Virus record (IMG/VR): IMGVR_UViG_3300014494_000005
Span: 1-64,000 of that record
Reading direction: 5' to 3' (one strand)
Length of the DNA stretch: 64,000 bases
Part shown: in pieces, positions 3,263 through 51,600 of the stretch
How positions within the stretch are numbered: the stretch's first letter is position 1
Layout: each line of letters begins with the position of its first letter
Program-made: the position numbers and the translations under genes
Notes under the pieces: generated by a model
Databases searched by the model: none
What the model was told of the DNA's origin: nothing
The model's input: the letters and a program-made list of their open reading frames with translations, nothing else

Positions 3263-3307
3263 ATTACTAAATTTTTTTTATAAAATAAATAACTTTTCAA
3301 AATATTT

Positions 3308-3318
3308 AAGTATTTATA
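3308..3318 (+). promoter_or_regulatory. AAGTATTTATA putative late-promoter motif upstream of tnpB
   Basis: Exact copy of a motif found 11-21 nt upstream of several ATGs. Confidence 0.55.
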
Positions 3319-3339
3319 CTAAATAAGAGAATAGTATAA

Positions 3340-4611
3340 ATGTTAAAATTATACAAATATAAACTAAAACCGGATAATAACCAAATTATTTTATTAAATA
3401 AACATTTTGGCTGTATTAGATTTATTTATAATTATTTTCTCAATGAACGTAAAAAAGAATATGAAACTAATAATCAAACACTTAATTATTATGATAATAC
3501 AAAAGCATTAACCGAATTAAAGCATTCAAATGAATATATTTGGCTTAATGAAATTTGTGCACAATCTTTACAACAGTCTCTTAAACATCTTGATGGAGCA
3601 TATAATGGATTTTTTAAAGGTAGGACAAAGTTTCCAAATTTTAAATCTAAACACAATAAAAATAGTTTTTGCGTTCCTCAAGCAGTAAAATTAATTAATA
3701 ATAAACTATATATACGTAAATTTAAAGGAGGAATTGGTGTTATTATTGATAGGAAATTTAAGGGAATTATAAAACAATGCACAATAACCAAAACACCAAC
3801 TAATGAATATTTTGTTAGTATTTTAGTTGAAACCGAACATGTTAAATTACCTAAAACTAATAAAAGTATTGGAATAGATTTGGGATTAAAAGATTTTGCA
3901 ATAACATCAGAAGGATTTAAATATAAAAACAATAAATATACTAAACAATATGAAAAGAAATTAAAAAAAGCACAACAACATTTATCAAAAAAAACAAAAA
4001 ATTCGAAAAAATTTGAACAACAAAGATTGAAAGTGGTTAAAATATACAAGAAGATAACCAATTCTCGTGTAGATAATCTACATAAAGTAAGTACTGACCT
4101 AATTAAAAAATATGACATAATTTGTTTAGAAGACCTTAATATTAAAGGTATGTCAACAAGATGCAAGCCAAAACAAGACAAAAATGGTAAGTATTTATCC
4201 AATGGTCAATCAGCAAAATCAGGACTTAATAAATCTATATCAAATGCTAGTTGGGGTACTTTTGTTGAAATGCTTAATTATAAAGCCAATTGGAATGATA
4301 AACAAATTGTTAAAATTAATAGATTTTATCCTTCAAGTAAAACATGTCATATTTGTGGCTATATAAATCAAGACTTAAATCTTTCTATTAGAGAATGGAA
4401 GTGTCCTAAATGTGGTATTGTTCATGATAGGGATATAAATGCTGCAAAAAACATATTAAAAGAAGGTCAGAAAATATTACTTAATGATTTAACAAATAAT
4501 ATTGACAATAACAAATCGTCAGGGACTGACGATAACAGACGTGGAGACCAAATAAGACCTGTTATAACGGGCACAATCGATGAAACGTCCAAAATTCTTA
4601 GCATAAGTTAA
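3340..4611 (+). mobile_element. tnpB: IS200/IS605-family TnpB RNA-guided endonuclease (no tnpA nearby)
   Basis: N-terminal HTH (YKYKLKP...FGCIRFIYN), RuvC-I IGIDLG, RuvC-II CLEDL, Zn ribbon CHICG...CPKCG, RuvC-III HDRDINAAKNI. Confidence 0.95.
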
Positions 4612-5001: not shown

Positions 5002-5515
5002 CTAAAATTGCCATTTGAATATATTCATCATCAACATTATATTCATAACATTCTTTATTGGCAATCATAATAACAACACCTTTTTTACAATGTTTTAATA
5101 TTCGTTTTAAATTGGCAAAATTATCATTATTTTGCCAAAATTTTGTTATAATACTAAGTAAATGATGTGGTTTATTAACACTGATGATTGGTGATTTTTT
5201 ATCTACATATCCACCAAGCATTGGTATCATTACATCATATCGTGGATTTATAATATCTGTTTCAATATCATATTGAAATATGGGAGTAAATACAAATCTG
5301 ATTTTATTAATTGATACACGATTTTCTGATAAAATATTTCTGTTTTTAATAATTAATTTTTTTTCATAATCCGATAATACATATGAACCAATAGAATATT
5401 TTTTATAAATTCTTTTATTAATAATTGAAGTGATTATTTTTTTAATTCTACCATAGAAAAAAATAAAAACACTTATTAGTAATAACGCAATTATTATTAA
5501 ATAAATTATTAACAT
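4952..5515 (-). CDS. Hypothetical protein with N-terminal TM anchor
   Basis: Hydrophobic N-terminus. Confidence 0.6.
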   Translation of the reverse strand: MLIIYLIIIALLLISVFIFFYGRIKKIITSIINKRIYKKYSIGSYVLSDYEKKLIIKNRNILSENRVSINKIRFVFTPIFQYDIETDIINPRYDVMIPMLGGYVDKKSPIISVNKPHHLLSIITKFWQNNDNFANLKRILKHCKKGVVIMIANKECYEYNVDDEYIQMAILDDEIEKYNQNNENYGN

Positions 5516-19337: not shown

Positions 19338-20174
19338 TTATTCCATATCTGGAATTAAATTATATAAAAATTCCATATCTTGAGTAAAAATTGGACATTC
19401 AGTACTTACCCAACGACTACGAATTGCTACTGCACTATTCAATTTATCTCTATCAGGTTCAATTTCAAATTCCTGTTTAATAATAAGTCTACCTCTTTTT
19501 AACTTAGGTGCATAGTCATTCCAATTAATACCCTTTTGAAATATCATTTCTTGTTGTTCGTTTGAACTTTTATTTTCCAGTTCTTTGTGACTGTAAAGAC
19601 TTTGGGCAACACTTGAAATACTATTTCTTACACAATCTTTTTGTCGCCAAACTATCATGTTAGCAACTTCAGTTTTTGAAGGAATTGTAAATACACGAGC
19701 ATCAAATTCAGCAAACTTAATTCCTTTAATTAGTATTTCACTAAATACCGCACCGTTTTGCAGTGAAGTAGGAAAGTATGAAGTATCAGGGCAAGCATTT
19801 TCAGTAACGTATCTTTTTAATCTTGCCATGTTAAATGCATTTGTTGCCATACTTGCAGCAACACTTGTCATTTTCTGTATATTACCATCAAACCAAGCAT
19901 CTGTAGCAATATCATCAAAATCAGTCAATAATATACTAATTTCATCTGACTGTACAAATGCAAATTTAGCACCTTGTATATTTTTACAAAGATAACAAGC
20001 GGTTTCATCCATATCATAAATTAAACCATCATCAAAAGGTCTTATTAATCCACGACAAAATTGTGAAAAACATCGACCATCAATACGAATTATAGTATAG
20101 GTTCTACGAGGAAGACTTATACGAGTTCTATCCTCATAATATTTTTTCATTCTATCACCAAGTGCGTCTTTCAT
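19338..20174 (-). CDS. tRNA-His guanylyltransferase (Thg1)-like 3'-5' polymerase
   Basis: IIRIDGRCFSQF, FVQSDEISILL, FDARVF, WRQKDCVRNS; likely start 20174 (MKDALGDRMK). Confidence 0.9.
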   Translation of the reverse strand: MKDALGDRMKKYYEDRTRISLPRRTYTIIRIDGRCFSQFCRGLIRPFDDGLIYDMDETACYLCKNIQGAKFAFVQSDEISILLTDFDDIATDAWFDGNIQKMTSVAASMATNAFNMARLKRYVTENACPDTSYFPTSLQNGAVFSEILIKGIKFAEFDARVFTIPSKTEVANMIVWRQKDCVRNSISSVAQSLYSHKELENKSSNEQQEMIFQKGINWNDYAPKLKRGRLIIKQEFEIEPDRDKLNSAVAIRSRWVSTECPIFTQDMEFLYNLIPDME

Positions 20175-20184
20175 TATTTTTATT

Positions 20185-21003
20185 TTATTTCCAATTCCAC
20201 AAATAGTCTCTTTTTTCATCATCTTGATGAAAGCCATCATCATATATTCTGTATTTATTAGCTTTTATTTTAGGCGAATCAATTTTTTTTAATTCTTCTA
20301 AATTATCTTCAGATACATCATCAATTTGTATATCAGATTTTTTTGATTTTAATGGTAATGCACCACCGCATTTTTTACATGCCCAATCAATTTGATATTG
20401 ATATTTACTTAAATCATATTTCCACCAATCTGGATGGTCATAAATATTAATACCGTCAACACCATTGAATAAATATGATAACATGCCAGCAACTTCACAA
20501 AAGAATGCACCTTTAGGATTTATTGTTGCTGACCATTCATTTTGAATCCAACATTTGTCAATACATTTATTAATTGTATCTTGACTTATATTATATTTAT
20601 TTTTTATTGATTCTGATGATGTTAATAATGGTGTATGTTTTGATATAAAATCACCAGTATGTTCATTAATAATAATATTATTTGTTATAAAATAATTACC
20701 AGCATATTTCATACAATCCTTATTATTTGTCCATAAACCTCTTTTATCATATGCTCTATATTTTTTAAAAAGTTCTAATATTTGTGGAAATTGTGGATGT
20801 AATAGTGGTTCACCACCCATAATACCAACAGTGCCTTGAAAATCTTTTAAGGTAATTAAAATATCTTCAATATATTTTAAATCCATAAAATATATTCTTT
20901 CTTTTGTGTAATGTCCACAAAATCTGGTACAATTACAACAAGATTTGTTGCATAAATTTGTAACATCAATTTGGATAATCCACATGTCTTTAATTTGTCT
21001 CAT
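20185..21003 (-). CDS. Radical SAM protein
   Basis: CNKSCCNC (CxxxCxxC), GGEPLLHP, C-terminal Cys cluster. Confidence 0.85.
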   Translation of the reverse strand: MRQIKDMWIIQIDVTNLCNKSCCNCTRFCGHYTKERIYFMDLKYIEDILITLKDFQGTVGIMGGEPLLHPQFPQILELFKKYRAYDKRGLWTNNKDCMKYAGNYFITNNIIINEHTGDFISKHTPLLTSSESIKNKYNISQDTINKCIDKCWIQNEWSATINPKGAFFCEVAGMLSYLFNGVDGINIYDHPDWWKYDLSKYQYQIDWACKKCGGALPLKSKKSDIQIDDVSEDNLEELKKIDSPKIKANKYRIYDDGFHQDDEKRDYLWNWK

Positions 21004-21015
21004 TTGTTTTAATAT

Positions 21016-22059
21016 TTATTCTTTATTATCAATTAAAAACTTATTTGAAATTGCTTTAAAGCTAAGTCTACCCTGATTTTTAAGTTCATGCTTTACAAAT
21101 ACTACTCCTTCTCTTTCAATTAAAGGATTTAATACACTTTTATTTTGTGCATAAGCAAGTATTTCATCAACACTATTTGGAAGTACATAATTCCAATCCA
21201 ATATGGGAACGGTTTCTAACTTAAATTGATTAACTATAATATCAACCATTTCTTCATAAGGTAAGAATTCATATTTGTCAATATCAAACATACGAAAAAA
21301 TTTAATTGTTTGACCCTTTAACTTATATCTATTCTTTTGAATACCTTCACCAATAATTTCACCTTGTAATCCAAGATTTCTTCCAAGTTCACCAAGTTTT
21401 TTTTCAAGATAATTTTGTCTTGCGAATTTCCAAAATGAATTAGTTGAACTTTCATAAAATTCATAATTTCTACTACAAACACCAAATTCACCATTTTTCC
21501 AATAAAACGAACCACTGCTACCATCAAGTTTTTCTGTCGTTATAAACATCTGACCAACATATTCTATTGGTATATGCGGAAGTATTTGAATACGGTCTTC
21601 ATCAGTTATTATCATAAATGAAGGAAATCCACCCTTTGCATCACCTGCAAGTTCAGCAGGAATTGGTGCTTCATATTTAGTGATACCAAGTTCTTCAGTA
21701 ACATCAAGACCTATAGGACTAATAGCATTTTCATGTAATATAAGTTCCGATTTATCCAATTCATTAATATGCCATTGAAGTTCAATAGGAAGAATATCCA
21801 ATGGAAAACAAATGCCCTGCGAAATCTGTCCACGAAATTTACAGGTTCTAATACGAAATTTGTCTTTTCTTAAAAATTCAAATTCTGAACGTTCAGATAA
21901 TAATGAATCTATTTCACAATAAACACATAATTCTCCTACATGAAATTCATCTTTCTTTACAACTACTTTCCAACCCAATACTTGTGCAACTTCAATTGCA
22001 TCAGCATCTGGAATTGGATTGATGGATAATATTTTTTGTATTGTTGCTAATTTTCTCAT
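21016..22059 (-). CDS. RNA ligase, Rnl2/DRB0094 family
   Basis: N-terminal RKLATIQKI..PIPDADAIE, motif I TEKLDGSS, LQGEIIG, REGVVF, FKAISNKFL. Confidence 0.9.
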   Translation of the reverse strand: MRKLATIQKILSINPIPDADAIEVAQVLGWKVVVKKDEFHVGELCVYCEIDSLLSERSEFEFLRKDKFRIRTCKFRGQISQGICFPLDILPIELQWHINELDKSELILHENAISPIGLDVTEELGITKYEAPIPAELAGDAKGGFPSFMIITDEDRIQILPHIPIEYVGQMFITTEKLDGSSGSFYWKNGEFGVCSRNYEFYESSTNSFWKFARQNYLEKKLGELGRNLGLQGEIIGEGIQKNRYKLKGQTIKFFRMFDIDKYEFLPYEEMVDIIVNQFKLETVPILDWNYVLPNSVDEILAYAQNKSVLNPLIEREGVVFVKHELKNQGRLSFKAISNKFLIDNKE

Positions 22060-22070
22060 AATTTTTATTT

Positions 22071-22200
22071 AAAACCAGTTCATTTATCTACTGGCAAAGT
22101 TAGGTTTAGTCGATAACTTTCCTTTATGTGGAGAACGTTTTTATTTTTTCCAGAGGCATATTATTCCACCCATCCATTGGCTTTGCCTAATTCCAACTCG
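22071..22200 (-). ncRNA. Structured leader between the tRNA-like RNA and the RNA ligase
   Basis: Pairings GGCAAAG/CTTTGCC, GTGGA/TCCAC, AAAGTTA/TAACTTT, and a CCAGT/ACTGG hairpin followed by TTTT. Confidence 0.4.
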
Positions 22201-22206
22201 TCTTCG

Positions 22207-22312
22207 AGCGCAGAATGAGATTCGAACTCATACTATGGGCAATTAATTCAAGTGCACTTTTGCCGAGACCATACATTTGTATATGTGCCTTACCAATTGA
22301 GACTATCTACGC
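22207..22312 (-). tRNA. Non-canonical tRNA-like RNA (tRNA-Gly-like body, aberrant anticodon arm, 38-nt extra arm)
   Basis: Acceptor GCGTAGA/TCTGCGC + U73, D arm GTCT-CAATTGGTA-AGGC, T arm ATGAG-TTCGAAT-CTCAT; anticodon stem CATAT/GTATG with a 6-nt loop; no encoded CCA. Confidence 0.65.
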
Positions 22313-22336
22313 TTATGGGATTGCTCCCACAAATAT

Positions 22337-22912
22337 TTACTTTTTAAATAAATCAACATTATCTTCTTTACCGGATTTATATGCATTTTCAGTCACTTCG
22401 GAAGTAATTATTGTAATACCTTCTTTAAGAACTTTACCATTAGCATCTGCTAAATAACCTATATTATGACGACTACCAATAACAATACTGTTTGGAAATG
22501 TCTGGCACATAGTTTTATGTTGACGGTCAATATCAATAAGTTTTTCCTGTTCAACAAAGAAACCATTTCGTTCACCTTCAATAGCTGCCATCAATTTATC
22601 ATACAATTTTGTATCAAAATTTGGATTACTTTCTGTTATCCATTTCATTAATGAACCATCATTTTTTGAATAACGACCTGCAATAAGGTCAGGATAAATT
22701 TTTGCAAATGCATCTTTATACTGGTCAGCAACTTGTGCATCCTGATGAATAATTTTCCACATTTTATCAAAGAATGCAGCACATACTTTTTGCTGTGCAT
22801 CACCTGTTTGGTGAGTGCGTATTTCTGAGTTACTTACACTAACCACCCAGAGAAAGGCGAATAATGCGAATATTGCACATACTCCAATTCCAATAAATAA
22901 ATTTTTTTTCAT
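22337..22912 (-). CDS. LemA-like membrane-anchored protein
   Basis: N-terminal TM then helical domain ending FPNSIVIG. Confidence 0.5.
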   Translation of the reverse strand: MKKNLFIGIGVCAIFALFAFLWVVSVSNSEIRTHQTGDAQQKVCAAFFDKMWKIIHQDAQVADQYKDAFAKIYPDLIAGRYSKNDGSLMKWITESNPNFDTKLYDKLMAAIEGERNGFFVEQEKLIDIDRQHKTMCQTFPNSIVIGSRHNIGYLADANGKVLKEGITIITSEVTENAYKSGKEDNVDLFKK

Positions 22913-48686: not shown

Positions 48687-51600
48687 TTAAAATCCTCTAT
48701 TTTTCTTTACATTATTCGTATTTGTAAATGTTTCGGGATTGTAGCCAAGTAAATGTTTCATTTTATCCATTTGTTCATTTATTACTGGTTTTTCTACTTT
48801 TTGTTCATTTTCATTTAATTTCTGAACAGGATTTTTAATCGCAAATACTATCTTACCATCTGTATAAAATTTATGTTCTGACATTGCTTTAACAACTGCT
48901 TCATTAACGATTACTTTATTATCAATTGTTTTACTATTATATGTATTACCTAATCCAGTAAAATCTAGTTCAAACAAACCTGTTTGTCTTGCAGTTCCAG
49001 ATGGAGTAATTAAATTTTTTACTTCATTTAATTTAAAATCAATTAAACGTCTTTTGTCTAAAGCATCAATATATCTACCAGTAACCATTGATTCATTAAG
49101 ACCCTTACCATCATTAAATCCAGATTTTTCTTTATTAAATTGTGTTTTATCAATACCTTTTTCAATTGGTTGTGGGTCTTTATTATACATGGGTGCTTTA
49201 CCTTTAAATTTAAGTTGTTTTTGTCTTATATTATATACTTTATCACCCATGTCTTTTTTCATGCGGTCTTCAAAACGTTTTCCCGGTTCATTATCATAAA
49301 CCAAACTATGTTGACCATTACGATACAAATTAACTTCATCTTGTTCCTCAGTTGTCATATTACGTTTTGGAATTTCATCACCTTTATTATTTGTACTATC
49401 GCCAACATTTTTTAAAGATTCATCACCTTTAGCATCTGTTGTTTTAATTTCTTTTTCTTCAATATCCTGACCTAATTTTTGTGGGTCTTTGCCAACATCA
49501 GTTTGTTGGTCTTTCCATTGAAGTTCTTTTTCAACATCAATGATTTCTTTAGTACCACTATGTTGTAAGTCTTTCTTAAAATTGACTGGATTTTCACCAG
49601 TAACACGGTCTTTTAAAACCAATGCAGATGGTTTTCTATCTTCACTCATTTTTATTAATTTTTGATGATGAATTGAATAAGCATTCAATTCGTTATTTAA
49701 TTCTTCTAATAATTTAAAATCTTCGTTCATACCACCACTTGTTTGTTGCATACCAACAGGCATTGTAGTATTATCCATTTTGTTTGACATTGAATCTTCT
49801 TTAGGTTGCATTTTTGATGCATTTGCCATTGTTGTAGAATCTTCATCTACCTTGTCAGGTAATTTATCATGTTTAGTTGAAGCGAAATCTTCAACATCTT
49901 TTTTACTAACATTTTTTGCAATTTTATTAACTTTATCACTAACTTTATTTGGAGATAATTCGCCCTTTTGTACTGCATGTGCCATACCAAAAAGACGTTG
50001 TTGTGATGCTGACTTAGCTTTTTCTTCGATTTTTTTTGATTCTTCCATTGTATTAAGATTTGGTTTGTCTGGGTCGCCAGTTTTTATTGTATTTAATTCA
50101 ATACCAGTGTCTTTATTATTCCAATGTTTAACTGCATCACTGGTGAATGCATTTGTTTTATCTATAATAAAATTATCTTCTTTTTCTTTGTTTGTTCCAA
50201 AAGGTTTACTTATTTCTTTACCTTGTTGATTAATACCTGAAATACCATCATCAGGTAAATTTGGATTATCTGGATGCGGAAAATATGAATGTTTTTGTGT
50301 CATATCATTATGTAAAATTTTTACATCGTCATCTCTCATTTTATCGACATCCTGACCAATATATAATGATGTATTATCATCAATTCCTTTTTTACTTTTT
50401 TCACGTTCTGATGTTTGTGGTATTTCACTAACGCCTAATCCTTTATTACTTCCAGTATGAGATTGTTTATATTCTTGACCTAATTTTGTTTGATATGAAA
50501 GGTCTTCTTCATTTAATATTTTAATAAAATTTTCAAAACCACTTGGGTCAACAAGATAATTTTTATTTTCTTGAATTATTGTACCACCGGGAAACATTGG
50601 TTTAGTTTTTACTTTTGATTTACCCTTTACTTTCATTAAATCACCACTACCCCATACTGAAGGTCCAACATATGCCCCTGAACCACTTACATTACTTCCA
50701 GTATCACCTGCACCACCTGCAGCACCAGTACCAGTCATTTCATTAAGAATATTACCATTATCATCAACTAAAGAATAATTTCCGTGGTCTGAAATGAACC
50801 ATGTATTAGGATACCATTTATTAGAATCCTTCCAAGTTTTTACTGCATCAAATGCGTCTTGGTCTTCAACAAATTCACCAATAAATTTTCCACCACAACT
50901 AACTGAAAGTTTATAACCATTTGATGAAATAAAACAATCTTCTTCATTTGGTTCGTCAATTTCATTTTCTTCACTAATCGTATTCTTCTTATATCCTAAT
51001 GCTGGAGCGAATGCACCAGAACCACCTGCAGCACCCGTACTTTCATTTGTAGAATTTAATACATCAAAATTATAACCAATACTTTCAAGTTCGGTTTTAA
51101 GATTTTGATATTCTTCAGGAGTTGCAAGTCTACTTTCTTTTGCATACCTTGGGTCTACTCCACCGTGTTGACCAACATGAGAATATCCCACTTTTAAATT
51201 TCCTTTATTGTCATAATTTTCTTCAGGAAAATATGCAAATAAATCAGGATTTTTGGGGTCTTTTTCATTAACTAAAAATAATACTTTAGTTAATGGTTCA
51301 CTAGTTTCATCAACTTCAGATTTAACTTTGGGTTCAACTAATTTAGTTCCTGTACTGTCAGTCTTTTTCATTTTTTCTTCTCCTGCTTGTTTTAATTGAT
51401 TAATGCCGCTTTGGTCCCTGCGTTCTTTTTTTACAGGTATTGCCATTTTATATTTTTGTAAATATTTTGGGCTATTAAGCACATAATCATTGAACAATAT
51501 ATTTTGAACGGTTTCGTTTGCGTGGTATCCATAACGATTTGTTCCAGTATTATCATCTTTACCATCGCCCATCATTTTATTATATTCTGCACTTAATTTT

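Follow-up and report, generated by a model that had tools for sequence, protein, structure and literature searches.

The minus strand of a 64,000-nucleotide stretch of viral DNA (positions 1 to 64,000 of IMG/VR record IMGVR_UViG_3300014494_000005; hereafter the window) carries, at 22207..22312, a 106-nt element with the frame of a transfer RNA (tRNA) and no anticodon. The virus record is 348,923 bp long, with 25.6% G+C, and the window covers its first 64 kb; the sequence recurs in many peat and permafrost metagenomes. Our analysis confirms the element as a real, conserved and uncatalogued small RNA of a jumbo-phage clade; its carriers are environmental phages of roughly 350 kb. Comparison of related sequences indicates that selection maintains a full tRNA frame, a capped stub of the anticodon stem and a long extra arm, the G-UGCA-C tip of which is conserved. 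The position of the RNA is fixed as well, with a phrog_1383 gene on one side and, on the other, a string of repair genes encoding an RNA ligase and a Thg1-like protein. On balance, we lean towards the view that it is a functional member of a conserved, non-decoding family of tRNA-framed RNAs of ~105 nt, and likely a tRNA mimic in a conflict over tRNA damage and repair.

Architecture of the element

The RNA, here called type 2, runs from G1 (22312) to U73 (22207), limits that rest on its sequence and on a match to the covariance model R1 described below; all of its parts lie on the minus strand. Its 7-bp acceptor stem (GCGTAGA/TCTGCGC, 22306..22312 with 22208..22214) contains G1-C72, C2-G71, G3-C70 and a U4-G69 wobble, and the discriminator U73 (22207) is not followed by an encoded CCA. 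The dinucleotide TA (U8 A9) separates the 5' acceptor strand from the D arm (22287..22303), in which the stem GTCT/AGGC encloses the loop CAATTGGTA with G18 G19 and after which A26 follows. At the place of the anticodon arm, ViennaRNA and the homologues define hairpin 1 (CATATA-CAAA-TGTATG, 22270..22285), and the linker GTCTC joins it to hairpin 2 (GGCAA-AAGTGCACTTGAATTAA-TTGCC, 22238..22264), a long extra arm at the variable-loop position with 17 nt between its stem strands. The tip of hairpin 2 reads AAG-UGCA-CUU in the window's copy. The segment CATAGT then leads to the T arm (ATGAG-TTCGAAT-CTCAT, 22215..22231).

Thus, the element has the 7-bp acceptor stem, the D arm with G18 G19 and the T arm with a TTCRANY loop of a canonical tRNA, whereas the 5-bp anticodon stem, the 7-nt loop, U33 and the anticodon are all missing from the window's copy. 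A preliminary description of the window, made from its letters, had listed the three G-C pairs at the acceptor end, U73, the GG of the D loop and the T loop TTCGAAT, all of which can be read directly in the sequence. Its 6-nt anticodon loop was correctly said to lack U33, but this segment is better read as a 6-bp stem with a CAAA tetraloop. Similarly, the 38-nt insert that it placed at the variable position, with GGCAA/TTGCC, can be refined to a genuine extra arm whose conserved feature is the tip. The pair that it proposed between A-1 and U73 does not extend to the family, as nearly all homologues have T at position -1 (A in two), facing U73, and the alternative pairing TATGG/CCATA lies outside the family consensus structure.

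Folding energy by itself is unremarkable. The window's copy has z = -1.4, which is not significant, and its consensus fold (-22.2 kcal/mol) lies ~3 kcal/mol above the minimum free energy (-25.4 kcal/mol). The T arm agrees in 17 of 17 positions with the T arm of tRNA-Arg(CCT) encoded by the phage itself; a paralogue search of the phage genome found nothing beyond an 18-nt T-arm identity to this tRNA, and the extra-arm insert is not a repeat there.

Detection by a family-specific covariance model

The comparison with ARAGORN and with Rfam models suggested in the preliminary description does not assign the element to tRNA, transfer-messenger RNA (tmRNA) or Y RNA. ARAGORN makes no tRNA call in the window by default, and with introns allowed and in tmRNA mode it returns nothing or low-threshold artefacts only. 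Rfam has no match to the element at gathering thresholds, and no tRNA, tmRNA or Y RNA in 801 nt at E<=10. In a search of the whole genome, the sole match of the tRNA model RF00005 to the element is a local one of 12.5 bits in the T arm (gathering threshold, 29 bits).

The covariance model R1 was built from eight homologues of one subgroup, with the window's copy left out. It matches the window's copy end to end (39.1 bits, model positions 1-105, E = 1.3e-6 in 320 kb searched), and in the whole 349-kb genome this copy is the top match (E = 1.4e-6), with runners-up that include tRNA-Ser (29.7 bits) and tRNA-Leu. R1 recovers all 20 homologues described below, of which two reach the tRNA threshold together with one RNA of another kind (type 3, see below). 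The full-length model match, the capped hairpin after A26, the G-UGCA-C-tipped arm and the genomic slot together identify the window's copy as a member of the R1 family. In GenBank phages, blastn matches the ligase alone and finds no match to a relative's RNA with its trailer; Rfam 15 has no family for this RNA, and full-text literature searches retrieved no description of the family.

Homologues and compensatory changes

Searches of IMG/VR with the downstream ligase returned identical copies of the locus or loci without the RNA. Among the latter, L006 and L007, with a ligase 83% identical, lack the whole 1.6-kb segment 22060-23700 that holds three open reading frames (ORFs) and the RNA, which marks the region as an indel hot spot, and L008 has an unrelated tRNA-Met. 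The exact T-arm pattern and the upstream protein likewise gave identical copies only in IMG/VR. In a large protein database, however, this upstream 191-aa protein has homologues at 90-59% identity, and every contig that encodes them has tRNA-like elements directly after the gene. Two of these, L062 and L064 (upstream protein 66% and 65% identical), carry clear homologues of the element. Their acceptor stems read GCGTGGG../..CTGCGC-T, with a double change from A7-U66 to G7-C66 in L062. The hairpin after A26 is CTATC-GGAA-GATAG in L062 and CCAATGT-AAA-ACATTGG in L064, and the stem of the second hairpin differs as well (AAATGT/ACATTT and GATAGG/CCTATC, respectively), while its loop keeps GGTGCACC.

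A search pattern derived from three copies (GTGCAC, gap, GTTCGAATC, N5, CTGCGCT) added four viral and ~21 metagenome loci, giving 20 distinct sequences of 100-113 nt in total. Although the neighbouring proteins of the homologues are only 39-66% identical, the odd architecture is kept with compensatory changes. All members share the acceptor stem, the D arm, A26, a hairpin, a short linker, a bulged extra arm and the T arm. Hairpin 1 has 5-6 bp and a loop of 3-7 nt (GGGAA, GGAA, GAGAA, AAA and others), a 7-nt anticodon loop with U33 occurs in no member, and no anticodon triplet is shared among the 20 homologues. CCA is encoded after the discriminator in 0/20 members, and the D-loop GG is retained in 20/20.

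In the resulting alignment (A4), 94.4% of cells are standard pairs against 73.4% after shuffling, with none of 500 shuffles reaching the observed value, and sliding the partner by 1-3 columns lowers the paired share to 36-53%. Double changes occur in 19 of the 28 pairs, and the covariation score is 0.63, compared with 0.26 and 0.08 for controls. Covariation among homologues, which the preliminary description had named as a check, is found in each of the six helices. The acceptor stem (helix 1) is 97.9% paired, and its pair 7-66 is GC in nine sequences, UA in five and AU in three. The D stem (helix 2) is 100% paired with double changes in two of three pairs; hairpin 1 (helix 3) has double changes in all five of its pairs; helices 4 and 5, which form the extra arm, covary; and the T stem (helix 6) is 99% paired with double changes in four of five pairs. 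The G-UGCA-C tip is present in 21/21 sequences, and its second pair is GC in 15, AU in two (including the window's copy), GU in two and a mismatch in two.

These data bear out the earlier proposal of a tRNA mimic rather than simple decay, in that the acceptor and elbow are intact, the anticodon arm is non-decoding, and the homologues keep this architecture through compensation. The relatives are not ordinary tRNAs beside a copy with uncompensated damage; they are themselves non-decoding and compensated. RNAalifold proposed a long-range pairing between GCAC at the junction of D stem and hairpin 1 and GUGC of the tip; we discounted it, since two helices that covary compete with it and the palindrome itself gives rise to it. 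The GUGCAC palindrome might also allow dimerisation by kissing loops; the covariation is equally explained by a local tip helix, G-UGCA-C, and in other scaffolds (L136, L096 and L094) this helix is plainly local.

Genomic slot and flanking features

The gene directly upstream (22337..22912, minus strand) encodes the 191-aa protein, which has a hydrophobic N-terminus, belongs to phrog_1383 ('virion structural protein') and matches nothing in Pfam. Its stop codon lies 24 nt before G1, and a phrog_1383 gene stands upstream on the strand of the RNA in 24 loci; a DNA ligase gene is found 1.5-2 kb upstream. In GenBank phages, the nearest relatives of the upstream protein are in Lak megaphages and Tenacibaculum phages, and R1 found no match in the phrog_1383 neighbourhoods of Lak-A2, LR756511 and Tenacibaculum phage pT24. 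The leader between gene and RNA contains the hairpin GTGGGA-GCAA-TCCCAT (22315..22330, minus strand), already seen in the preliminary description, which ends 2 nt before G1. It is conserved and covaries in L064 and L080, with the compensated forms GTAGGA-GCAA-TCCTAC (L064) and GTGGGA-GTAA-TCCCAC (L080/L089).

On the other side, a 3' trailer (22071..22206, minus strand) starts directly after U73 with CGAAGACGAG and ends just before the ligase ATG in a terminator-like hairpin and T run (22095..22071), the stem of which changes with compensation in L058 and L061. At least 14 related loci have a related trailer (…GGATAACGTGCC…AAACCTAAGTTTGCCAG-hairpin-TTTT) behind the last of their tRNA-framed RNAs. 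It is possible that the trailer acts as an attenuator for the ligase or is itself a small RNA. A scan for promoters and terminators found nothing above shuffles.

The downstream gene (21016..22059, minus strand) encodes an ATP-dependent RNA ligase of the NgrRnl/Rnl5 type, with an N-terminal OB domain and a nucleotidyltransferase domain (PF21189 and PF09414), which matches the Naegleria gruberi RNA ligase 5cot over its full length (E 6e-67). A full-length homologue of this type is found downstream in the window, L061 and L064, whereas the ligase of L062, L106 and ~14 other loci is a shorter PF09414 protein; in several of these loci, a small ORF (~84 aa) comes before it. The linkage of RNA and ligase holds in most loci and across two ligase architectures. 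A radical-SAM protein and a Thg1-like protein come after the ligase. The latter (19338..20243, minus strand; PF04446, phrog_4717) is a 3'-5' nucleotidyltransferase of the tRNA 5'-end repair type, and among solved structures, 4kgk ('Thg1-like uncharacterized protein'; E 2e-52) is the nearest to it.

An island of interchangeable tRNA-framed RNAs

In relatives, the slot contains up to three kinds of tRNA-framed genes, and several such modules stand in tandem. Type 1 (116-142 nt) has, by eye, a class II, tRNA-Leu-like D arm; type 2 is the family of the window's element; and type 3 (123-184 nt) has the discriminator A73 in six of seven cases. L058 and L061, in which the flanking upstream gene is 84-91% identical to the window's at the nucleotide level, have type 1 in place of type 2. 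This swap extends exactly to the discriminator base; beyond it, the shared trailer sets in again at 91-92% identity. Such coincidence of module borders with tRNA-like ends is expected if tRNA-processing enzymes make the ends.

Types 1 and 3 (116-184 nt) both show class II D arms by eye and have large, fast-changing bodies; they were located at L058:1188-1303, L061:4582-4698, L062:4593-4734 and 5110-5282, L065:3599-3769, L069:1684-1867 and L006:6845-6970, and also in L073, L075 and L087. In a 13-nt loop of the L058 and L061 RNAs, TAA or CAA stands at a possible anticodon position. In addition, the island of many relatives contains, upstream of the type-2 RNA, a conserved structured RNA of ~250-300 nt with a long closing stem that runs from GTTCTTTGA..AGTCTTTCTG to CAGAAAGATTTTTT (L062:4845-5109; also L067, L068, L070, L071, L073, L074, L077, L079 and L082). 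It has no Rfam family and is not present in the window's genome. The motif GTTCTTTGA, often followed by AAAT..TATAG, stands just upstream of this large RNA and of tRNA genes in the phage genome (G000:C1:238474, 240523, 258890 and others), and is a candidate for a phage promoter of RNA genes. IS605-type TnpB genes lie beside the island at L061:2635-3849 and L065:4121-6125, the latter with a resolvase.

Presence in RNA libraries

The region is present as unspliced contigs in four peat metatranscriptome runs. In run X16, a 917-nt contig of depth 14 extends over the upstream gene and the RNA and through the trailer as far as 22042, and the depth over the ligase body is 0-2.7. This pattern fits co-transcription with the upstream gene and termination at the trailer hairpin, with the limit that such contigs neither prove transcription nor report on processing, and that rare forms can drop out.

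A putative tRNA mimic in tRNA damage and repair

Because it has no anticodon loop, the RNA cannot pair with a codon, and would act by being bound as a tRNA look-alike. It would be co-transcribed with the phrog_1383 gene and released by two cuts, one made by RNase P at G1 and the other behind U73 by a nuclease for tRNA 3' ends, and would be provided with CCA, the genome encoding a nucleotidyltransferase of the CCA-adding type; the product would accumulate as a stable L-shaped molecule. The elbow, the acceptor stem, the anticodon-stem stub and the extra-arm tip would offer the contact surfaces, and the partner would be a tRNA-recognising protein, most likely one engaged in a conflict of tRNA cleavage and repair. 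The RNA might serve either as a decoy or competitor for a host tRNase that reads shape, or as a partner of the nick-sealing ligase and the 5'-end repair enzyme.

Ligases of the NgrRnl family seal nicks in duplex RNA, so that a duplex cut is their repair substrate, and Thg1-like polymerases rebuild the 5' strands of acceptor stems; these two neighbours point to tRNA damage and repair. Sets of RNA-repair genes are abundant in jumbo phages (PMC7824862), and a tRNA frame alone confers precise processing and protection from decay, as in the tRNA scaffold (PMC3753655). Bacterial Schlafen tRNases cut within the anticodon stem, that is, in duplex RNA, and not in the loop (PMC13056530), and this stem is retained in the present RNA. 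We infer that a tRNA-mimic decoy or a repair-enzyme partner is the better explanation, with the cleavage-signal model discussed below as its main rival. A broader and doubtful version would make the tRNA frame a scaffold for interchangeable RNA modules, with type 2 an anti-defence decoy for a host tRNase or a guide for the ligase and the 3'-5' polymerase. If true, types 1-3 and the expanded tRNA-like genes of unrelated phage contigs would form a wider hidden class of tRNA-framed noncoding RNAs.

Several points weigh against a functional mimic. Conservation of the T loop, positions 67-73 and GTGCAC is no evidence, since the search patterns required them; pairs were counted in an alignment fitted to the model, and the aligned sequences are related to one another. 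The window's copy is the most divergent member. The evidence from RNA libraries consists of assembler contigs, for which carry-over of DNA is possible. L066 has a tRNA-framed RNA with no ligase or Thg1 at the site, and all loci come from one phage clade, in which synteny may be inherited rather than functional, so that the ligase linkage is suggestive only.

The main rival, which we regard as unlikely though still deserving attention, treats the RNA as tRNA punctuation: the frame would serve only to attract RNase P and a 3' nuclease, whose cuts would leave the phrog_1383 mRNA with a 3' end protected by the hairpin and the trailer RNA with a defined 5' end, and the excised piece would be a by-product. 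The position of the stable, covarying GNRA hairpin 2 nt before G1 agrees with such a function, as do the conserved trailer that begins exactly after U73 and ends in a covarying terminator and the interchange of different tRNA-framed modules in the slot. However, a pure cleavage signal needs only the acceptor stem, T arm and elbow, and leaves the additional parts unexplained: hairpin 1, the extra arm and the G-UGCA-C tip are also maintained throughout the family, and the same tip occurs on other tRNA scaffolds in contigs where tblastn found none of the proteins of this locus.

It is improbable that the RNA is a non-ribosomal aminoacyl carrier, charged with glycine in most members, that donates its amino acid or titrates a toxin modifying aminoacyl-tRNA or CCA. 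Acceptor-stem microhelices can be charged by bacterial glycyl-tRNA synthetase, and the set G1-C72, C2-G71, G3-C70 and U73 of the window's copy recurs in 19 others; the CCA-adding-type enzyme also fits this role. Nevertheless, conservation of this set cannot be judged, since positions 67-73 were fixed by the search pattern, and L106, which was found without that constraint, has G1-C72, C2-G71, A3-U70 and A73. Furthermore, C35 and C36, major glycine determinants, are missing along with the anticodon loop, neither a FemAB-type transferase nor a class II aminoacyl-tRNA synthetase core was found in the genome, and other module types have other acceptor stems. A glycine-carrier role is thus possible but weak.

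An intron-containing or interrupted tRNA, which would decode after excision of an insert and joining by the neighbouring ligase, was an alternative in the preliminary description and is now largely refuted. It drew on the adjoining RNA ligase, on RF00005-positive tRNA genes of other phage contigs with 22-45-nt inserts in the anticodon arm, and on intron models that ARAGORN offers at relaxed thresholds. However, all single-segment deletions of 1-59 nt at every position yield a single ARAGORN call, Ser(TGA) (d34-36/27 nt), whose 6-pair anticodon stem has two mismatches; an anticodon-like loop is conserved in none of the 20 homologues, in which both hairpins covary as hairpins; and no joints occur in contigs of the four RNA libraries, which can miss rare forms. 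A decaying tRNA pseudogene or a chance cloverleaf might have been suspected from the rejection by tRNA finders, the ordinary fold energy and the absence of the segment from L006 (identity of the copy in all near-identical contigs being uninformative by itself), but it is already refuted by covariation, unless the alignment is an artefact of model fitting, because diverged homologues keep every helix through compensation, none is an ordinary tRNA, and the model E-value is 1e-6.

Comparison with known tRNA-like RNAs

Noncoding RNAs resembling tRNA are already known, including YrlA, the tRNA-like domain of tmRNA, viral tRNA-like structures and T4 RNAC/RNAD. What is new here is the combination of a full cloverleaf, a capped anticodon arm, a motif-bearing variable arm and a modular island beside RNA-repair genes. 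YrlA, a Y RNA encoded beside Rsr/Ro and RtcB, is similar in being a non-decoding mimic of the D/T elbow and acceptor next to RNA-repair genes, and the Ro system is present in a few jumbo phages (PMC7824862). The analogy with Y RNA drawn in the preliminary description nevertheless fails. TROVE/Ro (PF05731) was not found in the 349-kb genome, although control genomes were matched, and there is no Rfam Y-RNA match. The ends of a Y RNA form the Ro-binding stem, with the tRNA-like part internal, whereas the ends of the phage RNA form a true 7-bp acceptor stem, and the neighbouring ligase is RtcB for YrlA and an ATP-dependent enzyme of the Rnl5 type here.

The tRNA-like domain of tmRNA likewise keeps the acceptor stem, T arm and D-loop contacts and lacks an anticodon. 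The phage RNA, however, has no G3:U70, no mRNA-like part and no pseudoknots, and keeps a D stem and an anticodon-stem stub. tmRNA was rejected as an identity for the element, which has G3-C70 and no tag reading frame or pseudoknots and is negative with ARAGORN -m and Rfam. The variable arms of class II tRNAs (Leu, Ser, Tyr and Sec) are roughly 13-21 nt long. They resemble the phage RNA in having a long helical arm between the anticodon arm and the T arm, but its extra arm measures 27 nt (22238..22264) and has a conserved tip, and it has no anticodon loop. T4 RNAC/RNAD sit in the T4 tRNA gene cluster, whereas the present RNA is encoded apart from the tRNA cluster of its phage, in the 3' region of a protein gene; the two cases are alike as phage-encoded small RNAs, a likeness drawn from their descriptions. 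RNAC and RNAD are small stable RNAs of unknown function made late in infection (PMC9697503). In the engineered tRNA scaffold, the acceptor, T and D arms are kept and the anticodon stem-loop is replaced with an insertion hairpin (PMC3753655). That scaffold is man-made, whereas the phage design is natural, has its insert mainly at the variable-arm position, and occurs as tandem modules in relatives.

Other tRNA-like genes

The phage genome has 33 tRNAs called by ARAGORN and three more full-length RF00005 matches above threshold, and most of them lie at 238-283 kb, far from the locus of the element; tRNA-Ala is absent from these 36. tRNA-Pro, tRNA-Gln, tRNA-Thr(TGT) and one tRNA-His measure 85-93 nt and have long variable arms, which is unusual for class I (G000:C1:238316-238402, 238643-238730, 261779-261863 and 282699-282791). 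The tRNA at G000:C1:268386-268463 has the anticodon CTA, of the amber suppressor type; reading TAG or TGA as sense did not raise the ORF cover (0.748 against 0.756 and 0.766), which gives no indication of recoding. A tRNA-like gene at G000:C1:263279-263354 (plus strand; RF00005, 34.5 bits) has no recognisable D or anticodon arm, and shares an identical acceptor stem with the phage tRNA-Trp. At G000:C1:134197-134333 (minus strand), a 137-nt tRNA-framed gene with ~60 extra nt in the D-arm region and the anticodon-type loop CGTTAAA adjoins tRNA-Met and is preceded by GTTCTTTAAAATATAT; it was missed by ARAGORN and scores 25 bits with RF00005 (partial) and 22.5 bits with R1. Within the window, the weak full-length RF00005 match at 49577-49653 (minus strand; 14.1 bits, E ~1) is probably due to chance.

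Two further groups occur in other viral contigs. The RF00005-positive tRNA genes with inserts of 22-45 nt in the anticodon arm are 107-117 nt long, and their inserts share GCGTAA and AGTAAGT (L044:2004-2111, L045:1151-1258, L049:3614-3728 and L057:3166-3282, 3305-3417 and 3652-3758); it is possible that these are short tRNA introns or another tRNA-framed class. In the second group, a hairpin tipped with UGCA (for example, CTTGG-TGCA-CCAAG) lies inside expanded tRNA-like genes with tRNA-Leu-like D arms (L105:4417-4528, L125:3262-3373, L136:10602-10715, L137:1952-2063, L096:8129-8240 and L094:2313-2416). None of the proteins of the element's locus was found by tblastn at these loci, and the UGCA tip may be a portable motif.

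Implications

Phage tRNAs are now viewed as weapons in conflicts over tRNA cleavage. A conserved, non-decoding phage RNA with the body of a tRNA would extend this idea from replacement tRNAs to mimics. Since the family is not seen by tRNAscan-type tools or by Rfam, counts of such RNAs in phage genomes are probably too low. A new RNA family entry could build on the covariance model and the alignment of 20 sequences, and the locus, with its RNA, Rnl5 ligase and Thg1-like enzyme, is a defined and testable set as well as a natural counterpart of the engineered tRNA scaffold.

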